Assembly (NCBI GenBank): GCA_964252035.1
Contig: OZ176215.1
From: Podarcis erhardii
Taxonomy: Eukaryota
Length of the DNA stretch: 64,000 nt
Direction: 5' to 3' (one strand)
The notes under the pieces are model-generated. The model searched no databases. It saw nothing but the letters and a program-made list of their open reading frames with translations, and was not told the DNA's origin. Made by a program: the position numbers and the translations under genes. Below, in pieces: positions 15,070-53,400 of this stretch (its first letter is position 1; each line of letters begins with the position of its first letter).

Positions 15070-15859
15070 AGCTGATTGCTGCGTAATTTTAAAAGGGGGA
15101 CTCTGCTAGAATATGGAACTTGCTAGCACAAGTTAGGAAGGATATCATTAAATAATATACCCTCTCCTGCCTCCCTAATAATCCCCACACTGGGCTTCTG
15201 GGGTGCTATTTTGTTTTTAATCTTGCTGACAAAGTGACACAATTTAGTTCTATCCTAGGGTTGCCATAGGTCCTCTTTCCCCCGGACATGTCCTCCTTTT
15301 CAAGGGTAAAATGCCAGTCTGGGGGGATTTGTTAAATATGCCAAATTTTCCTGGGGTTTTTTGTTTGCTACCCTTGATCCCACCTTAGGTATACCTCTAT
15401 TGGGCACGCCTCCTGTCATTCAGCAGTACTGCGGCGCTCATTGGCTCGAGGGCCTCCCTTACCTACCTATGTCCTGCCCTCCATCACCATGGGATCAGGT
15501 GACTCCCCTGGACAACTTGATTCGCTTCAGGGCCTGCTTTTCAAGGGGCTTGGCAGGCCCGGTTGGGTGGCGGCAGTGTCCATCAGCCCTCTCTTCAAAT
15601 TAATTGGATGAAGACGAGGTCTCTCCCCTCAGCATCCCGCCCCACCGCCTGGCCTCTCCTGGAGCTCAGGGAGGGCTGTGCTGGAGAGGTCAGCTCTTCC
15701 CAGTCCCTCTTTTCTCTCACCCCCTTTTTCTGCCTCATTCCCTCTTTCCTCCCCTTCCTACCTCCCTTGCCAGGGCTTCACCTCCGCCTGGGTCTCCCCC
15801 GTACCTTCTCCTTCTTCTCTCTGGCAACTTGGTGGTTCCTCTTTGGGATCTGATACCTT

Positions 15860-16985
15860 TGTTGTTGTTGAGTCGTTTAGTCGTGTCCGCCTCTTTGTGA
15901 CCCCCTGGACCAGAGCACGCCAGGCACTCCTGTCTTCCACTGCCTCCCGCAGTTTGGTCAAACTCATGTTCATAGCTTCGAGAACACTGTCCCACCATCT
16001 CGTCCTCTGTCGTCCCCTTCTCCTTGTGCCCTCCATCTTTCCCAACATCAGGGTCTTTTCCAGGGAGTCTTCTCTTCTCATGAGGTGGCCAAAGTCTTGG
16101 AGCCTCAGCTTCACGATCTGTCCTTCCAGTGAGCACTCAGGGCTGATTTGCTTCAGAATGGAGAGGTTGGATCTTCTTGCAGTCCATGGGACTCTCAACA
16201 TTATAGTGTAGTGTTATAAGAAAAACTGCTCCCTTTCCCTTATGGGATATTCCAAAGCCCCTATAGATGTCTCTGCTTTTTAAGACGCTGTCTAGGTTTG
16301 CCATCACCTTTCTCCCAAGAAGCAGGCGTCTTTTAATTTCATGACTGCTGTCACCATCTGCAGTGATCATGGAGCCCAAGAAAGTAAAATCTCTCACTGC
16401 CTCCACTTCTTCCCCTTCTGTTTGCCAGGAGGTGATGGGACCAGTGGCCATGATCTTCGTTTTTTTGATGTTGAGCTTCAGACCATATTTTGCGCTCTCC
16501 TCTTTCACCCTCATTAAGAGGTTCTTTAATTCCTCCTCACTTTCTGCCATCAAGGTTGTGTCATCTGCATATCTGAGGTTGTTGATATTTCTTCCGGCAA
16601 TCTTAATTCCGGCTTGGGATTCATCCAGCCCAGCCTTTCGCATGATGAATTCTGCATATAAGTTAAATAAGCAGGGAGACAATATACAGCCTTGTTGTAC
16701 TCCTTTCCCAATTTTGAACCAATCAGTTGTTCCATATCCAGTTCTAACTGTAGCTTCTTGTCCCACATAGAGATTTCTCAGGAGACAGATGAGGTGATCA
16801 GGCAGTGATCAGGAGGTGATGAGGTGATTCTTTAAGAACTTGCCATAGTTTGCTGTGGTCGACACAGTCAAAGGCTTTTGCATAGTCAATGAAGCAGAAG
16901 TAGATGTCTTTCTGGAACTCTCTAGCTTTCTCCATAATCCAGCACATGTTTGCAGTTTGGTCTCTGGTTCCTCTGCCTCTTCTAA
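15860..16985 (-). mobile_element. RTE-BovB LINE, 5'-truncated, RT C-terminal half, rearranged
   Basis: ORFs 16137-16766 (GVQQGCILSPCLFNLY...NLRYADDTTL) and 15758-16201 (RVPWTARRSN...GRQRTRW) match RTE/BovB RT; (CAA)n tail at 15860. Confidence 0.95.
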
Positions 16986-19797: not shown

Positions 19798-19935
19798 CAG
19801 GCATCCCCCAACTCAGCCCTCCGGATGTTTTGGGACTACAATTCCCATCATCCCATACCACTCGTCCTGTCAGCTAGGGATGATGGGAGTTGTAGTCTGA
19901 AAAAACTTCTGGAGGGCCGAGTTGGGGGATGCCTG
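19798..19935. mobile_element. hAT MITE inserted in a CR1 3' tail (CR1 from ~19670)
   Basis: TIRs caggcatccccc / gggggatgcctg; TSD catttggg / cctttggg; internal gactacaattcccatcat inverted repeat. Confidence 0.85.
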
Positions 19936-20832
19936 CCTTTGGGGATCGCTCCCATTATTCTGTTCATGGCTCATATCCAAATCAGATGGGTGTCCATGTT
20001 TTCTATGCACATGTACATAAGTATGACAATAAACCAGTGGTGGTAAGGTCTACCTTTATCACTAAATGGAGTGGTGGGAGCAAAACCTGTCCTCTCACAC
20101 ACCTAAGGACCATCATTTCATTTCCTGCCCTGCCCTGTAACTGCCATATGCAACACTGCTTCTATTCTGCTGCCGTTTGTCTTCTGCCAAAAACTATGCT
20201 ATTTGTCTCCACTCTGGCAAAATTAAGTACTGTAACTTACATAATTATGTATATAATTACATATTTATGTAAATTAGATTGTCATTACATTATGCTGTCC
20301 CATTCATTTCAACTCAAATTCATTTCCCCCAATGCAAATGGGCAGGGAAACTGTAAACATTTACATAGCGCTTGTGGACTGAAGGCAACAACAGATTTGT
20401 ATTTGCTGGATTGATTTATCTTCTGGACATGGGCCAAATAAGTGAGCATTGGCAATTTTGCCTGGTTTCTTTTTTTAAAAAAAATAATATTTATTGGTTT
20501 TTAACAGAAAAAAGAGTTACAAATCAATACACAATAAAAGCACGAAAAACAAAATACAAAAACCAAAATTTAACATAAAAAGAAGAAAAAAGAAAAAGAA
20601 GAAAAACAAAAATCCCTCTTTCTGATATCTTAACTCTCGTTGACTTATTTTCATGACTTCCTCACACCTTCCGTTTCTGTATTTCATTTAAAAATTTGTT
20701 CAGCCAATTCATACTCTCTTAATTTACCCTTAATTGTTTACCATCACATATTATATTTTCCAAATTTTCATCTATTATCAATCCTTTCTTAGATATTCTT
20801 ATTTTACCAAACCTTTCTGCTAAAGCCAATTA

Positions 20833-21602
20833 CCGTATTTTTCATCCCATAGGACGCTCCGTCCCATAGGACGCACCTAGTTTTTTGGGGGGGAAATAAA
20901 GGGAAAAAAATTTCCCTTTATTTCCCCCCCAAAAGCAGGTCGGGGAAACCGAACCAGGTCGAGGAACGGCGCTGCGCCTCCCTGCTGTCCCCCGAGCTTG
21001 TGCGGCTGGCCGATGTCTGCCTCAGGCAGCAGGCTGCTATCCGCAGTGTGCGGAACCCTGCGGGGAACTCCTGCAGGGCTCCCCACGCTGCGGATGTCTG
21101 TCCGGCGCACGGGGCACTCTGCTTCAGGGCGCCCCGCCTGCCGGGCGGCACGCTGCTATCTGCAGCGTGGGGAGCCCTGCGGAGAACTCCCACAGGGCTG
21201 CCCAGGCTGCGGATGTGCTCCCGAAGCGCCGGGCGCTCTGCTTTCAGGGCGCCCGACGCTCCGGGAAGCAGGCTGCTATCCGCAGCCTAGACATCCCTGT
21301 CGGACCTCCTGCAGGGCTGCCCAGGTTGTGGATGTGCTCCCGAAGCGCCGGGCGCTCTGCTTTCAGGGCGCCCGACGCTCCAGGAAGCAGGCTGCTATCC
21401 GCAGCCTAGACAGCCCTGCGGGACCTCCTGCAGGGCTGCCTAGGCTGCGGATGTCTTCCTGAAGCCTGGAGAGCGAGAGGGGTCGGTGCGCACCGACCCC
21501 TCTCGCTCTCAAAGCTTCAGCGAAAGCCTGCATTCGCCCCATAGGACGCACCCAGATTTCCCCCTTCTGGGGAAAGTGCGTCCTATGGGGCGAAAAATAC
21601 GG
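20833..21602. mobile_element. Tc1/mariner (Tc2-type terminus) MITE, 770 bp, GC-rich, with ~120-bp internal tandem units
   Basis: TA|ccgtatttttc...gaaaaatacgg|TA; gctgctatc recurs at 21033, 21152, 21272 and 21391. Confidence 0.85.
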
Positions 21603-21758
21603 TAATTCCTTTCCAGCACATTCTTATATTTCATTAGGGTTACACTAATTCCAAAAATAAAAATATATAAAAGGAAATTCTCATTCTAGTTTTATCCAAC
21701 GTCCTTTCTTCCTGGTTACGGGTTATGTCAGTCCTTTCTCGCCATTATATCCTGTCCA

Positions 21759-22394
21759 TCAATCTGGTGTTCTAATGTCCGAAGCTCTCAGATCCCTTCT
21801 ATGCCCCCTCTGCAGATTTTCTTGTTCCTGTTTGTACTTGCACACTTCCTTGTCCCTTGTTGGGTTCTTTTGTGATTTCTTCCCTTTCTCCTTAGGGAGT
21901 GAGTCTCCGGGGAATTCTGTACAGTAATAATCTCCATTTTCTTTCCTCATAATGTCCCATTCCCCACTGACCCACTCCCCTGTGTTGGTTTTGTAATCCA
22001 AAAAATAGTTGTTCCAAAAATAGTTATCAACTTGTTTCACAGTCCCACCAGAGCTAAGAACTTCCTTAACTCCAAAAGCTTGCAGACACTCTCCAAGTTC
22101 GATCTTCCAGTATTGCAACTTTTGGTCCTGCAGGACTTTGAGTCTCTGAAACTTTTGAGGTGCAATCCCCACCTCTTCCATCTTCATCTGCCCTTGGACT
22201 TGCTTTATTGAATCGATTCCCTGGATTGACTGTTGTAAGGTTTCTTTGTCTTCGTTTCGTATTAGTTCGTGTTTACTAGCTGCAGTAGATATAAAATCCA
22301 ACTTTTCATTCATCAAAGACACTTTCTCATCCAGCTGCTGCAGCTTAGCATGTATTTTGCCAAGGGCAGAGAGTAAAACTTCCTCCCTGATCAT
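21759..22394 (-). CDS. 211-aa ORF of the non-autonomous element; N-terminal heptad/coiled-coil-like segment; product unknown (possibly ORF1-derived)
   Basis: ATG at 22394 to TGA without interruption; C-terminal RDLRASDIRTP is shared with the second element at ~52600. Confidence 0.55.
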   Translation of the reverse strand: MIREEVLLSALGKIHAKLQQLDEKVSLMNEKLDFISTAASKHELIRNEDKETLQQSIQGIDSIKQVQGQMKMEEVGIAPQKFQRLKVLQDQKLQYWKIELGECLQAFGVKEVLSSGGTVKQVDNYFWNNYFLDYKTNTGEWVSGEWDIMRKENGDYYCTEFPGDSLPKEKGKKSQKNPTRDKEVCKYKQEQENLQRGHRRDLRASDIRTPD

Positions 22395-24561
22395 TTCTGT
22401 TCAAGGTCAAGTAGCTGGTCCCACGGTCTGATTTTCACAGCTGTTATATCTTCTCTGTAGGTTGCAGCAAACAAGCTGACAAACTCCCTCTAGAGGACAC
22501 AGTTTCTATTTAACGTCCATCTTTAAAATGTATCCAACAAAGGAAAACATTCACTTTCAATTTTCAAATACTTTGTTTCCTTACCATACAATATAAAAAA
22601 GCAGAAAACAGCATTGAAGTTACTTTGTTTCTCTTCTGTTTCTATCTGTCAAAAGTATTCCGTTTTCAATTAATGGACATCTCCAACAATTTCTGTCTGA
22701 CGTCCCGTCCCCAAGTTAGGGACGATGGAGCTTATATTCCTTTACTCTCTCTGCAGGATTAAAAAGTCAAAACTTCTTCCCCCCTTTTCCCCTGCCGTCA
22801 AGGGGGTTTTGATGGTTATAAATGCAGGAAATTTCAATCTTAGAATCAGATTTCCAGGTTAAAGCATACAGAGTCTTTTGCTTCAGTCTGTTTACAAAAA
22901 GCGGAAGGCGGACTTCCTGTTTAGACCTTCCTGCTTCATTGCCTAATTCTTAAATTTTCTTAGCCAAATCTTCCGTTTTTACTCACGGGTGCTTGTTTAA
23001 AGTCGAATTGTCACAGGAAAGAGGACAGTGCTCTCCAGCATCGGCTATGCAGCTTCGCTCCGCAGAAGTAGCGATTGACTCTCAGCACCGCGCCAAACAC
23101 CCCGTCCCGCTCCGGAGCCCTTTGCAGGGTTCCTTTGCCAATCGGGGGGGGGGCGCAAAAGGTGCCCGCCGAGTCCCACAGTCGCAGGCTTCACCCGCCT
23201 GCGGTTTTCGGAAGGGTCCCCGCTTCGCTGTAGCGGCAGGACCCGATTTCTGCAGAGCTTCTCCCTCTAAGTTAGAGGGAATCCGCCATTGCCGCCGCTG
23301 CCTCCGGAAGTCCTTTGCCTGGTTTCATTTTCATCAGGATTCCCTGACATTCCTACACAGATTCTGTGCTGCTTCAAACCATTCTCTCCCAGCCTGCTAT
23401 GGCTCACTTCCTGTGCTGGAAAAAACAGACTCTCTCCCTGCTCTTCACTCCTGCATTATAGCCAGTCTGGAAGGCAAGTGTTTTGCAAACCAATGGCACT
23501 TTAGTCTGGCCCTAACTTAACCGTCATTGGTTTATATGGGACTAAGTGTGACTGGATCCAACCTAGGATGTGTTTGTGACCAGCACATGCTTTCAGGTGT
23601 GTGCATCATAGAAACTATTCCAGGTAGTGAGGAACTGGTTATGGCTCTTCATTGTGTATACATATAGCAGAAAATGCATATTGCTGCTCAAATGAAGTGA
23701 ATTTCTAAAGTGGCCTCCCCAAACCTGGTCCACTGCAGGGGTTTTGGATCATTTATGATTCCATTTATTTCCTTTCACGAAAAAGAGAATATCTCCAAGT
23801 GACTCCACTAAAATATATCCACTAAAACAAAGAAAACACGTTTAAAATGTTAATGCAGTCTGCTATGCCAACAGGGGGTTGTCAGAGGAGTTGTATTCCA
23901 CAACACCTGGAGGGGGGCAGGTTGGAGAAGACTACTTTGTTTTGAAATGCCACGAAACTCCTACATCAAAAGCATGTCTCTAAAGGCGTGAGCATGCAAC
24001 ATAGACTCTTGCATTTCACAGTACACACATCTTTGTTTTGCTCCTTACTGATGTGCTGGAAACAGACAGGTTAGTGTGGCTTTCATTGCAGGAATGAATC
24101 CAACACATTTGATTGTCAACTATATTTCAAAGTAGCCTTATATCAGTGGTGGAGGGGGTGGAGTTTCTGAGCTACCAAAAGGTTAGCTCAGTTAACAGTT
24201 CTTACTATGCTCCAGGTTGGGCAACTAGTGGACTAAAAATAGGGGCAGAAGAGATTCTGCATTGATCTGCAGCTTGTTTTTATGCCCATGGACACCTGCT
24301 GTCTCAGATACCAAAGCTCAAATATTTGCAGTATGGATTCTGGTGGACATATTTTGTTTACTGTTTTCAAGTGTTGACCTTTTGGATGCCTAGTATACTG
24401 AAACACCAGCTTGCTTGTTTTTAAAAGTGTGGGTTCTGAAATCTGGTTTTGTGGGGGGGGGGATCAACCCATTGGGCTAATCCGGGCCAATATCCAATAC
24501 ATCCATTGAAAGCAGTTCTGCATTAATTACTGTATCTGAATTTGAGAGGGAGATGTCTGGC

Positions 24562-48356: not shown

Positions 48357-48489
48357 NNNNNNNNNNNNNNNNNNNNNNNNNNNNNNNNNNNNNNNNNNNN
48401 NNNNNNNNNNNNNNNNNNNNNNNNNNNNNNNNNNNNNNNNNNNNNNNNNNNNNNNNNNNNNNNNNNNNNNNNNNNNNNNNNNNNNNNNN
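48357..48489. other. Assembly gap (133 N)
   Basis: Run of N. Confidence 1.
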
Positions 48490-51590: not shown

Positions 51591-52210
51591 CTGCACAATT
51601 GAAAGCCCATCAAACTGATTTTGTTGGAATCTTGATACCATCATTTTTGGCCTAGAGAGCCCTGATCACAAAATGTATCCCAGGATTTCTCTCTAAAATA
51701 ACAAGTGGCCCAAGCTCCTAATCCACTAGCAGTTTCACGCTAAAAGTAATACATGTTCCTGGAAGGGGGTGATCTATCTGTTGAATAATTGTAGGAATGA
51801 TGTTGTGGAGAATGTGGCAAGATTTTTGAGTGACATCATGAAATTACATCACCAAAGGTCCTAGGAGCCACTTTTGCATCTCACAACGTCTGAACAGTTT
51901 TATCCTAAAGTACCTCCAACTATGTTTTGTCACCTGTGCTGTGTTCTGATCCATGTATATGACGTACTCTTACTACGCCAATAAGGGAGTTCGACTGATT
52001 GTTCCTGGAAGGGTAATGAGTACCCTCCAAAGGCTGCTCCCCACGTTCTCCAGCCTGCTGCTTTCCTCCTATGGAAAATGGCAATTCCGGTTTGCTCCAA
52101 TTTTAAGCTTAAGAATTTTTTAAGCTTAAGTTTTTAATGAGAGGGGAAAAGGGAAAACACTCAGACCTAGGCCTAGAAACCGTGGGTCAAGCAGAAAACT
52201 GCTGCCCCCC

Positions 52211-53234
52211 CCCCCCGAAGGAGACATATGTTGCCCCTGAAGAAAAGGAAGGAGGAGCTGTTATTTTGCAGATGTTAAAGGAGAGCTGTAATTTGAGGCC
52301 TGACATGATGGCAACAAAGCAAAACAAAAACCTGATGTGGAAAGTCGGGCCTGAATTGGAGAGTGGAAAATTGAGAGATCTTCTTATGTGGAGATCTGAA
52401 GACTGAAGGATTAGAAATTTGATCAAGGAAGTTGGAGCTTTGGGGACATTTGGACTTGAAAGGAGTATGAAACAAGATTTGGAGTACCCCATAGGCCTTA
52501 CTTTTAAGTATGGAGGTCTGGCTGGAAGAAACATGGATCCTGTTGGGCCGGAGCCTCTCCGAGATTTGGGGTTTAATATTAAGGACTATCAACCAGCAGA
52601 GAGGAACTGAGAGAGATTTAAGAGCCTCGGACGTGAGATCTCCAGGCTAAACAGTGTATCAAGTCTGATGGACACTTGTTGGGGACTGAAACCGGGAAGG
52701 GGGCGGGTGGAGTTTGGGAATCCAAAGGGTATACAATTATAATTTGTTCTGTTTTTATTCTTTTTTCGCTATTTGTATGAAAATGGGGAAAGCCGTGGAA
52801 GGGAAATTTTGGTCGACTTTAGGAAAAATATTTAAGAATGAGTGATGATGTATAAATATTGATGTTTAAGTTTGGATAACTTAAAATTGGTTTTTAAAAT
52901 GGTTCAAATTAAATGAAAATAAAGTTTGCAAAAATAAATTGAGAATATGGAAGAAAAGAGGAAAAGGGAAATAACAACATGCTAAAATAAATTATTAAGT
53001 TAAAGTTGAGAAGTAAGCAATAAGGACTTGCTGAGCTAAAAATTTAAATTGGAATACAAGAAGGGGAGGTGTGAGGAGGTCTGAGAAACAAGTTAAATGA
53101 AAATAAGTAACTGAAATTCTTTGTGTTTTTAATTGTTTGTAAGTTTTGGACTTTTGTATTTTTGTTATTTTTTGTTTATTTTTGTTTCTTGACTTCTTTT
53201 TAAAAATGCTAATAAATATTCATTAAAAAAAAAC
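52211..53234 (+). mobile_element. 5'-truncated, decayed relative of the 20470-23313 element, inserted antisense in NCOR2 intron 41
   Basis: 13-bp TSD actgctgcccccc (52198-52210, 53235-53247); AATAAA plus A tail; RGTERDLRASDVRSPG* motif and shared 3'UTR motif gaggtgtgagga(g/a)gtc. Confidence 0.8.
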
Positions 53235-53400
53235 ACTGCTGCCCCCCATGCTTTCTAGGCATGGGACAAGCGGAGGTGTGGATGAGCCCTAACACAAACA
53301 CACGTGCACACCTACCTAGCTCACTTATACACTGTTCCGCATGCACGGTACGCAATGCACACAGCTGGACTAGGTGAGCAAACATGCTGCCCCGTTAGCA

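Follow-up and report, generated by a model that had tools for sequence, protein, structure and literature searches.

SVA elements and processed pseudogenes are passengers of the open reading frame 2 protein (ORF2p) of LINE-1 (L1): their RNA polymerase II transcripts are mobilised in trans, and the resulting copies carry a poly(A) tail and a target-site duplication (TSD) of variable length. HeT-A of the Drosophila telomeres, a telomere-specific non-long terminal repeat (non-LTR) element of the Jockey clade, encodes only a Gag/ORF1-type protein and borrows the reverse transcriptase (RT) of another element. ORF1-only telomeric elements are also discussed in bioRxiv 10.1101/2025.06.09.658640. The half-L1 (HAL1) elements of mammals are, according to the passage of PMC5753468 that cites Smit 1999 and Bao & Jurka 2010, non-autonomous derivatives of L1. 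Here we describe an element at positions 20470–23313 of a stretch of 64,000 nucleotides (nt) of DNA from Podarcis erhardii (contig OZ176215.1 of assembly GCA_964252035.1), the whole of which is referred to as the window. By its architecture and presumed mechanism the element is a half-L1 (HAL1-type) that is derived from L1, and we do not assign it to the HAL1 families of mammals. It is very probably a full-length, recently inserted copy belonging to a multi-copy family of non-autonomous poly(A) retroposons of lacertid lizards, derived from a clade-1-type L1. Full-text searches of the literature gave no account of squamate elements that are half-L1s or contain ORF1 alone.

Boundaries, L1-type ends and age of the insertion

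The element lies on the minus strand and measures 2,844 nt, or 2,070 nt without a miniature inverted-repeat transposable element (MITE) that is nested in it. Its first base is at position 23313, the 5’ start is GGACTTCCGG and the sense-strand start of the insert reads GGACTTCCGGAGG... The perfect 13-bp TSD claimed in a preliminary description of this DNA was confirmed: the 13-mer TTTGCCTGGTTTC is located at 23314–23326 on the 5’ side of the element and again at 20457–20469 on its 3’ side. These are exactly two matches in the 64-kb window, and in none of 100 shuffles was the 13-mer found twice. The nick site on the sense strand, AT|GAAA, is loosely L1-like.

In the direction of transcription the element consists of a 5’ untranslated region (UTR) of 919 nt (22395–23313, minus strand; 46.6% GC, 37 CpG), an intact ORF (21759–22394, minus strand) encoding a family-specific protein of 211 residues followed by a stop codon, and a 3’UTR of 515 nt in total with 27.6% GC. 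The 3’UTR is divided by the MITE into an upstream part (21605–21758, minus strand) and a downstream part (20470–20830, minus strand), which holds an AATAAA signal at 20495–20490, a run of eight T and the A tail, the signal being located 13 nt ahead of the tail. One ORF, an AATAAA and an AT-rich 3’UTR had all been listed beforehand and are in place. The A tail that had been listed with them is present as well, but it comprises just 7 A (20476–20470) directly after the T8 run. When considering the ORF list for the remainder of the element, no other sense ORF of at least 60 residues was found outside the MITE. The element holds neither an endonuclease nor an RT, since its one 211-residue ORF has no Pfam match and there is no second sizeable sense ORF. 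This agrees with the earlier view of an element of ~2.07 kb, when counted without the MITE, that lacks both enzymes.

For the clade-1 L1s of Anolis carolinensis a conserved 5’ extremity, GACTTCCGGTG-N8-ATGGCG, has been described, together with 5’UTRs of 792–1,465 nt and 45.2 +/- 2.9% GC and 3’UTRs of 194–570 nt and about 33% GC (Boissinot & Sookdeo 2016, PMC5381506). At 23284–23312 on the minus strand the element carries an L1-type 5’ terminus, in which GACTTCCGG (an ETS-like box) is followed by AG, 12 nt and ATGGCG (a YY1-like core), and the complete 5’ end can be written as G-GACTTCCGG-AG-N12-ATGGCG. The 64 kb contain this composite pattern a single time, beginning at nt 2 of the element, and none of 100 shuffles yielded it. 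Because the terminus motif matches the published L1 consensus, the head of the element is, judged by its sequence, derived from L1. The head is rich in CpG, with 62–65% GC and an observed/expected CpG ratio of 0.76–0.91 in the first 300 nt, and the internal promoter is presumed to lie in these first ~300 nt. A YY1-like motif about 25 nt into a CpG-rich head had been noticed before and corresponds to ATGGCGG at nt 25–31.

Besides the terminus, the element shares with the Anolis clade-1 L1s a long CpG-containing 5’UTR of ~45% GC, an AT-rich 3’UTR and a sense strand in which A is abundant (36% of the ORF), and we judged its 5’UTR and 3’UTR to lie inside the published clade-1 ranges. In contrast to the Anolis elements, the lacertid element has no ORF2, its ORF measures 636 nt instead of ~1,066 nt, the spacer of the terminus is 12 nt instead of 8 nt long, and there is one clear CpG-rich block instead of two. 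Within the 5’UTR we also noticed a splice-donor-like GTGAGT (22984–22989, minus strand) and an acceptor-like CCTGCAG (~22750–22757, minus strand) at a distance of ~230 nt. This pair could be due to chance or could mark a 5’UTR intron as in some L1 transcripts.

A TSD, an L1-like nick and an AATAAA with an A tail are products of L1 ORF2p and are unlike the ends left by CR1, L2 or BovB. From these hallmarks of the insertion we infer the use of L1 ORF2p in trans.

The age of the insertion was assessed with Logan contigs of four runs from four organisms, among them the runs X1, X2 and X6, which were aligned to positions 19900–23900. In X1 and X6 the empty site is present: single contigs of 1.6–1.8 kb join 20456 directly to 23314 with 13 shared nt that equal one copy of the TSD, and the stretch 20470–23313 is absent from them together with the other copy. 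The flanks in these contigs are ~1.2–1.5% different from the window. Mobility is directly shown by these precise empty sites in two related organisms. Since a precise empty site exists in lineages that are ~1.3% diverged, the insertion is younger than that divergence or still polymorphic. The flanks in X2 are only ~0.2% different, and this run probably represents the window’s own species. No empty-site joint was found in X2; there the contigs from the two flanks break off 2 nt and 23 nt into the element. Neither of them formally bridges a junction, their ends being as expected for contigs at a repeat boundary, and the pattern fits an insertion that is present in X2.

The family and its 211-residue protein

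Contigs at least 88% identical to the 5’UTR, the ORF and the 3’UTR were found in all four runs, amounting to thousands of short ones, some of which show 0–3 differences over 128–172 nt. Inside the element the summed contig depth reaches 40–1000 times the depth of the flanks, which is a rough measure as contig depth is no copy number. The depth climbs toward the 3’ end of the element, and this gradient, read with the same reservation, fits 5’ truncation. The contigs in four organisms, together with the three ORF homologues introduced below, bear out the earlier proposal of a squamate non-autonomous family.

A separate observation was made for the first ~460 nt of the 5’UTR (22848–23249 in the window), where, in the three runs of greater depth, the summed contig depth amounts to 5–20 times that of the ORF body. 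Truncation at the 5’ end does not account for such an excess in the head. This sequence may also belong to other elements of higher abundance, e.g. autonomous L1s, or short GC-rich contigs may inflate the sum.

A word search with the ORF among 5.8 billion clustered proteins gave no match outside the element’s own family. Within the family it found two relatives, P0001, which originates from a Logan contig and shares 50% identity with the ORF, and P0002, the Podarcis muralis protein XP_077777216.1, whose first 169 residues are 52% identical. HMMER, run on 1.84 billion representatives, added only P0003, the Podarcis lilfordi protein CAI7935145.1 (43% identical). The three homologues span 43–53% identity, and two of the three are from Podarcis. 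The start of the ORF is common to P0002 and P0003 and its C-terminal end, ...DLRASDIR.P., to P0001 and P0003. Over residues 160–211 the identity to P0001 rises to 71%, compared with 50% overall. A word search with these residues alone returned P0001 only, a HMMER search without length filter revealed no long protein that shares the ORF tail, and a search of the ESM Atlas with the ORF gave no usable match. For the possibility that the ORF ends in the tip of L1 ORF2 the results on the tail speak neither way, as the libraries may contain no lacertid L1 ORF2p.

In the gene model behind P0002 (LOC114587986 isoform X1) the 169 residues of the family ORF continue into a C-type lysozyme domain (PF00062). 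The model may be an error of annotation; alternatively, a copy of the retroposon supplies the lysozyme-like gene with its promoter and first exon.

The frame is retained even in subfamilies whose amino acid identity has dropped to ~50%, which points to the ORF being kept by selection along active lineages. At 5 sites of the ORF the family-wide differences are best supported, and at four of them the change falls on the third codon position and is synonymous.

The protein can be divided into three parts. The N-terminal part (22206–22391, minus strand; about residues 2–63) is predicted to be helical and to have coiled-coil character, and the heptad scan gave a strong pattern at residues ~5–40, where the heptads are strongest. 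The middle has an acidic composition with many W and Y. The C-terminal tail (21762–21899, minus strand; residues 166–211) is basic, with an isoelectric point of 9.9 and 14 K+R, and is the best-conserved part across the subfamilies. AlphaFold2 places a helix over residues 2–63 with low confidence. When three copies of residues 1–72 were modelled together, a parallel in-register bundle with a/d contacts was predicted, with an ipSAE interface score of 0.56 in comparison to 0.01 for the best control. The runs agree in at least 98% of contacts, and the predicted local distance difference test score (pLDDT) of the partners is at least 81. Of 30 solved homo-pairs, 21 reached the mark used for self-association, as did none of 23 proteins solved as single chains; the mark is calibrated on two copies, not on three. 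The prediction for the N-terminus is thus a trimeric coiled coil with parallel chains. The layout recalls that of the L1 ORF1 protein (ORF1p), in which a coiled coil precedes a nucleic-acid-binding part, but the RNA recognition motif (RRM) and the C-terminal domain (CTD) by which ORF1p is defined are absent.

Nested MITE, relative at 52211 and other features of the window

The MITE occupies 20831–21604 within the 3’UTR of the element, with a core of 770 nt (20833–21602) and a TA duplication. Its terminal inverted repeats are 25 nt long (CCGTATTTTTC..CCCATAGGACGC), and the interior contains ~3.7 tandem units of 119 nt that are built from hairpins. At E-values up to 1, Rfam gave only weak hairpin matches within the MITE and no small-RNA-derived head. 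In all four runs, no other part of the examined stretch reaches the summed contig depth of the MITE ends. Family copies free of the MITE were likewise present in each run, with joints from 20830 to 21603 and from 20832 to 21607. From the existence of these copies we conclude that the MITE is a later and recent addition, made in this copy or in its direct source.

On the plus strand at 52211–53234 we found an old 5’-truncated retroposed copy with a ~13-bp TSD of its own (ACTGCTGCCCCCC, at 52198–52210 and 53235–53247) and an A9 tail. It is homologous to the element only from about codon 193 of the ORF through the 3’UTR (z = 8 and 16.5). The two 3’UTRs align over ~450 nt, including AATAAATATT (z = 16.5), and the last ~19 codons of the ORF are conserved at 52591–52647, these 19 residues being all that the hidden Markov model of the family detects. 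Its first 380 nt are unrelated to the ORF and to the 5’UTR (z = 2.0 and 0.9), and translated pieces of this upstream part had no match in the PDB. The copy may be a 5’-truncated autonomous L1 partner or another subfamily with the same 3’ module. It had been put forward as a diverged relative that speaks for a long-lived family. Since the copy shares the 3’ module only, it is weak evidence of a long-lived family, for which the diverged Podarcis proteins serve better.

A BovB/RTE LINE fragment is located at 15758–16947 on the minus strand. Besides the C-terminal region typical of such LINEs it contains an RT domain (RVT_1, E = 2e-18), and it is interrupted by stops. As partner LINE of the element this fragment is implausible for a poly(A)/TSD insertion. 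The window further contains an assembly gap at 48357–48489.

Classification, alternative origins and implications

The preliminary description had called the element HAL1-like, and with respect to its architecture this holds. There is no ORF2, the 5’ end is of L1 type according to the published Anolis consensus, and amplification as a family is seen. The integration is of L1 type as well, as indicated by the 13-bp TSD, the A7 after the AATAAA, the precise empty site and the 5’-truncated copy at 52211–53234. What did not stand is homology of the ORF to ORF1p, none of which is detectable; only the predicted trimeric coiled coil resembles that protein. Further similarities to the mammalian HAL1 elements are the size of ~2 kb, the single ORF in the ORF1 position, the poly(A) end and the presumed use of L1 ORF2p in trans. 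The lizard element differs from them in its lacertid host and in an independent origin from a lizard clade-1-type L1. Its ORF has just 211 residues without detectable RRM or CTD, whereas the ORF1p of HAL1 is recognisable, and the family is young, the empty site surviving in related organisms. HeT-A is similar in combining an ORF1-type protein alone with a foreign RT, but the lizard element has no sequence relationship to it, and its insertions, flanked by L1-type TSDs, are spread through the genome. SVA elements and processed pseudogenes differ in having neither a conserved ORF of their own nor an L1 promoter. Neither the ORF list nor Pfam revealed an ORF2p with APE endonuclease and RT as in an autonomous L1. 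Short interspersed elements are non-coding and have a Pol III promoter in a head derived from tRNA, 7SL, 5S or small nuclear RNA; here Rfam was negative for such a head and the ORF is conserved.

A layout like that of a capped mRNA, with a CpG-rich 5’ end, one ORF, AATAAA, A tail and TSD, would also be expected if L1 had made one or a few processed retrocopies of an ordinary host mRNA. We consider this very improbable. The sequence exists in many near-identical and diverged copies in several organisms, an L1 terminus motif forms its 5’ end, and each diverged subfamily retains the ORF; neither the word search nor HMMER found a parent-gene homologue outside the family. A classification as processed pseudogene or retrogene does not apply to a multi-copy element of this kind. 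With an L1-type 5’ terminus and 3’ end and nothing between them the element also looks like a deleted L1, and a one-off internal deletion of an ordinary L1 had been named in advance as the outcome that would overturn the family. Such a deletion, here or in the source copy, can be dismissed almost completely, as the ORF body is found in many contigs of the four organisms and in three separate, diverged proteins, two of them from Podarcis. The short form has propagated and diversified.

With regard to the ORF itself, the RRM and CTD of ORF1p are conserved across vertebrate L1s (PMC5381506), while its coiled-coil domain is too variable for alignment even among related L1s. It is thus plausible, if unproven, that the N-terminus stems from ORF1, and with moderate confidence we read the ORF as a shortened, strongly diverged ORF1 that has kept the coiled coil and lost RRM and CTD. 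Several points weigh against our overall interpretation of the element. At E-values up to 10, Pfam, including Transposase_22, gave no match for any of the four family proteins. Sequence and profile searches of the PDB returned no ORF1p-like chain for the ORF, only noise, and there is no ORF1p among the HMMER matches from the 1.84 billion representatives. The AlphaFold2 model of the whole ORF, which was built from an alignment of three sequences, has a mean pLDDT of 38 and is unusable. Among the RNA runs none contains this stretch, a result that has no bearing on expression. The synonymous bias comes from a sample of only 5 sites (p about 0.05), and copy numbers do not follow from summed contig depth. 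As to the 5’ end, the spacer of the motif is 12 nt and not 8 nt, and the reference, Anolis, is a distant lizard. The BovB/RTE fragment, an RT piece, is the sole LINE sequence in the 64-kb window, which offers no autonomous L1 for comparison.

The lack of similarity of the ORF to ORF1p or any other family (Pfam, PDB, ESM Atlas, the 5.8 billion clustered proteins and the 1.84 billion representatives) and the absence of the otherwise conserved RRM and CTD would equally suit a chimeric retroposon, in which L1-derived ends enclose a captured host fragment or a frame that arose de novo, with an RNA-coating or other role. We regard such a chimera as possible but rather unlikely: the ATG comes right after a 5’UTR whose length is typical of L1, a trimeric coiled coil like that of ORF1p, a domain too variable to be aligned, is predicted for the N-terminus, and the protein searches did not find a homologue among host genes either. 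Only tentatively do we put forward that the 211-residue protein is not a degraded ORF1p but a distinct, lineage-specific minimal RNA-packaging protein, made up of a trimeric coiled coil and a basic tail and free of RRM and CTD, that suffices to deliver its own RNA to L1 ORF2p.

In the mechanism that we propose, RNA polymerase II would start at the first base of the element from an internal, CpG-rich L1-type promoter, for which the GACTTCCGG and ATGGCG boxes are present. The transcript would be polyadenylated at its own AATAAA signal. The 211-residue protein would be translated from it, trimerise via the predicted N-terminal coiled coil and bind its own RNA, presumably via the basic C-terminal tail. 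The RNA-protein particle may then capture ORF2p, which supplies endonuclease and RT, from an autonomous L1. Target-primed reverse transcription at an A/T-rich nick would finally yield the duplication of 13 bp and the A tail that are observed at this locus.

Half-L1 elements have been described from mammals and are mostly old, whereas the lizard counterpart is independent in origin and young. It has a conserved ORF without two ORF1p domains that are thought to be essential for L1. This raises the questions whether an ORF1-like protein helps an L1 parasite to compete for ORF2p, and what minimum of ORF1p is needed. Copies of the family ORF also leak into gene models, e.g. the lysozyme-like isoform of Podarcis muralis, and a curated family consensus is therefore needed for masking. 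If the protein is indeed a minimal RNA-packaging protein, the element would represent a natural experiment on the minimum that a LINE-1 parasite needs, provided by a family that is still active in lizards of the Podarcis group.

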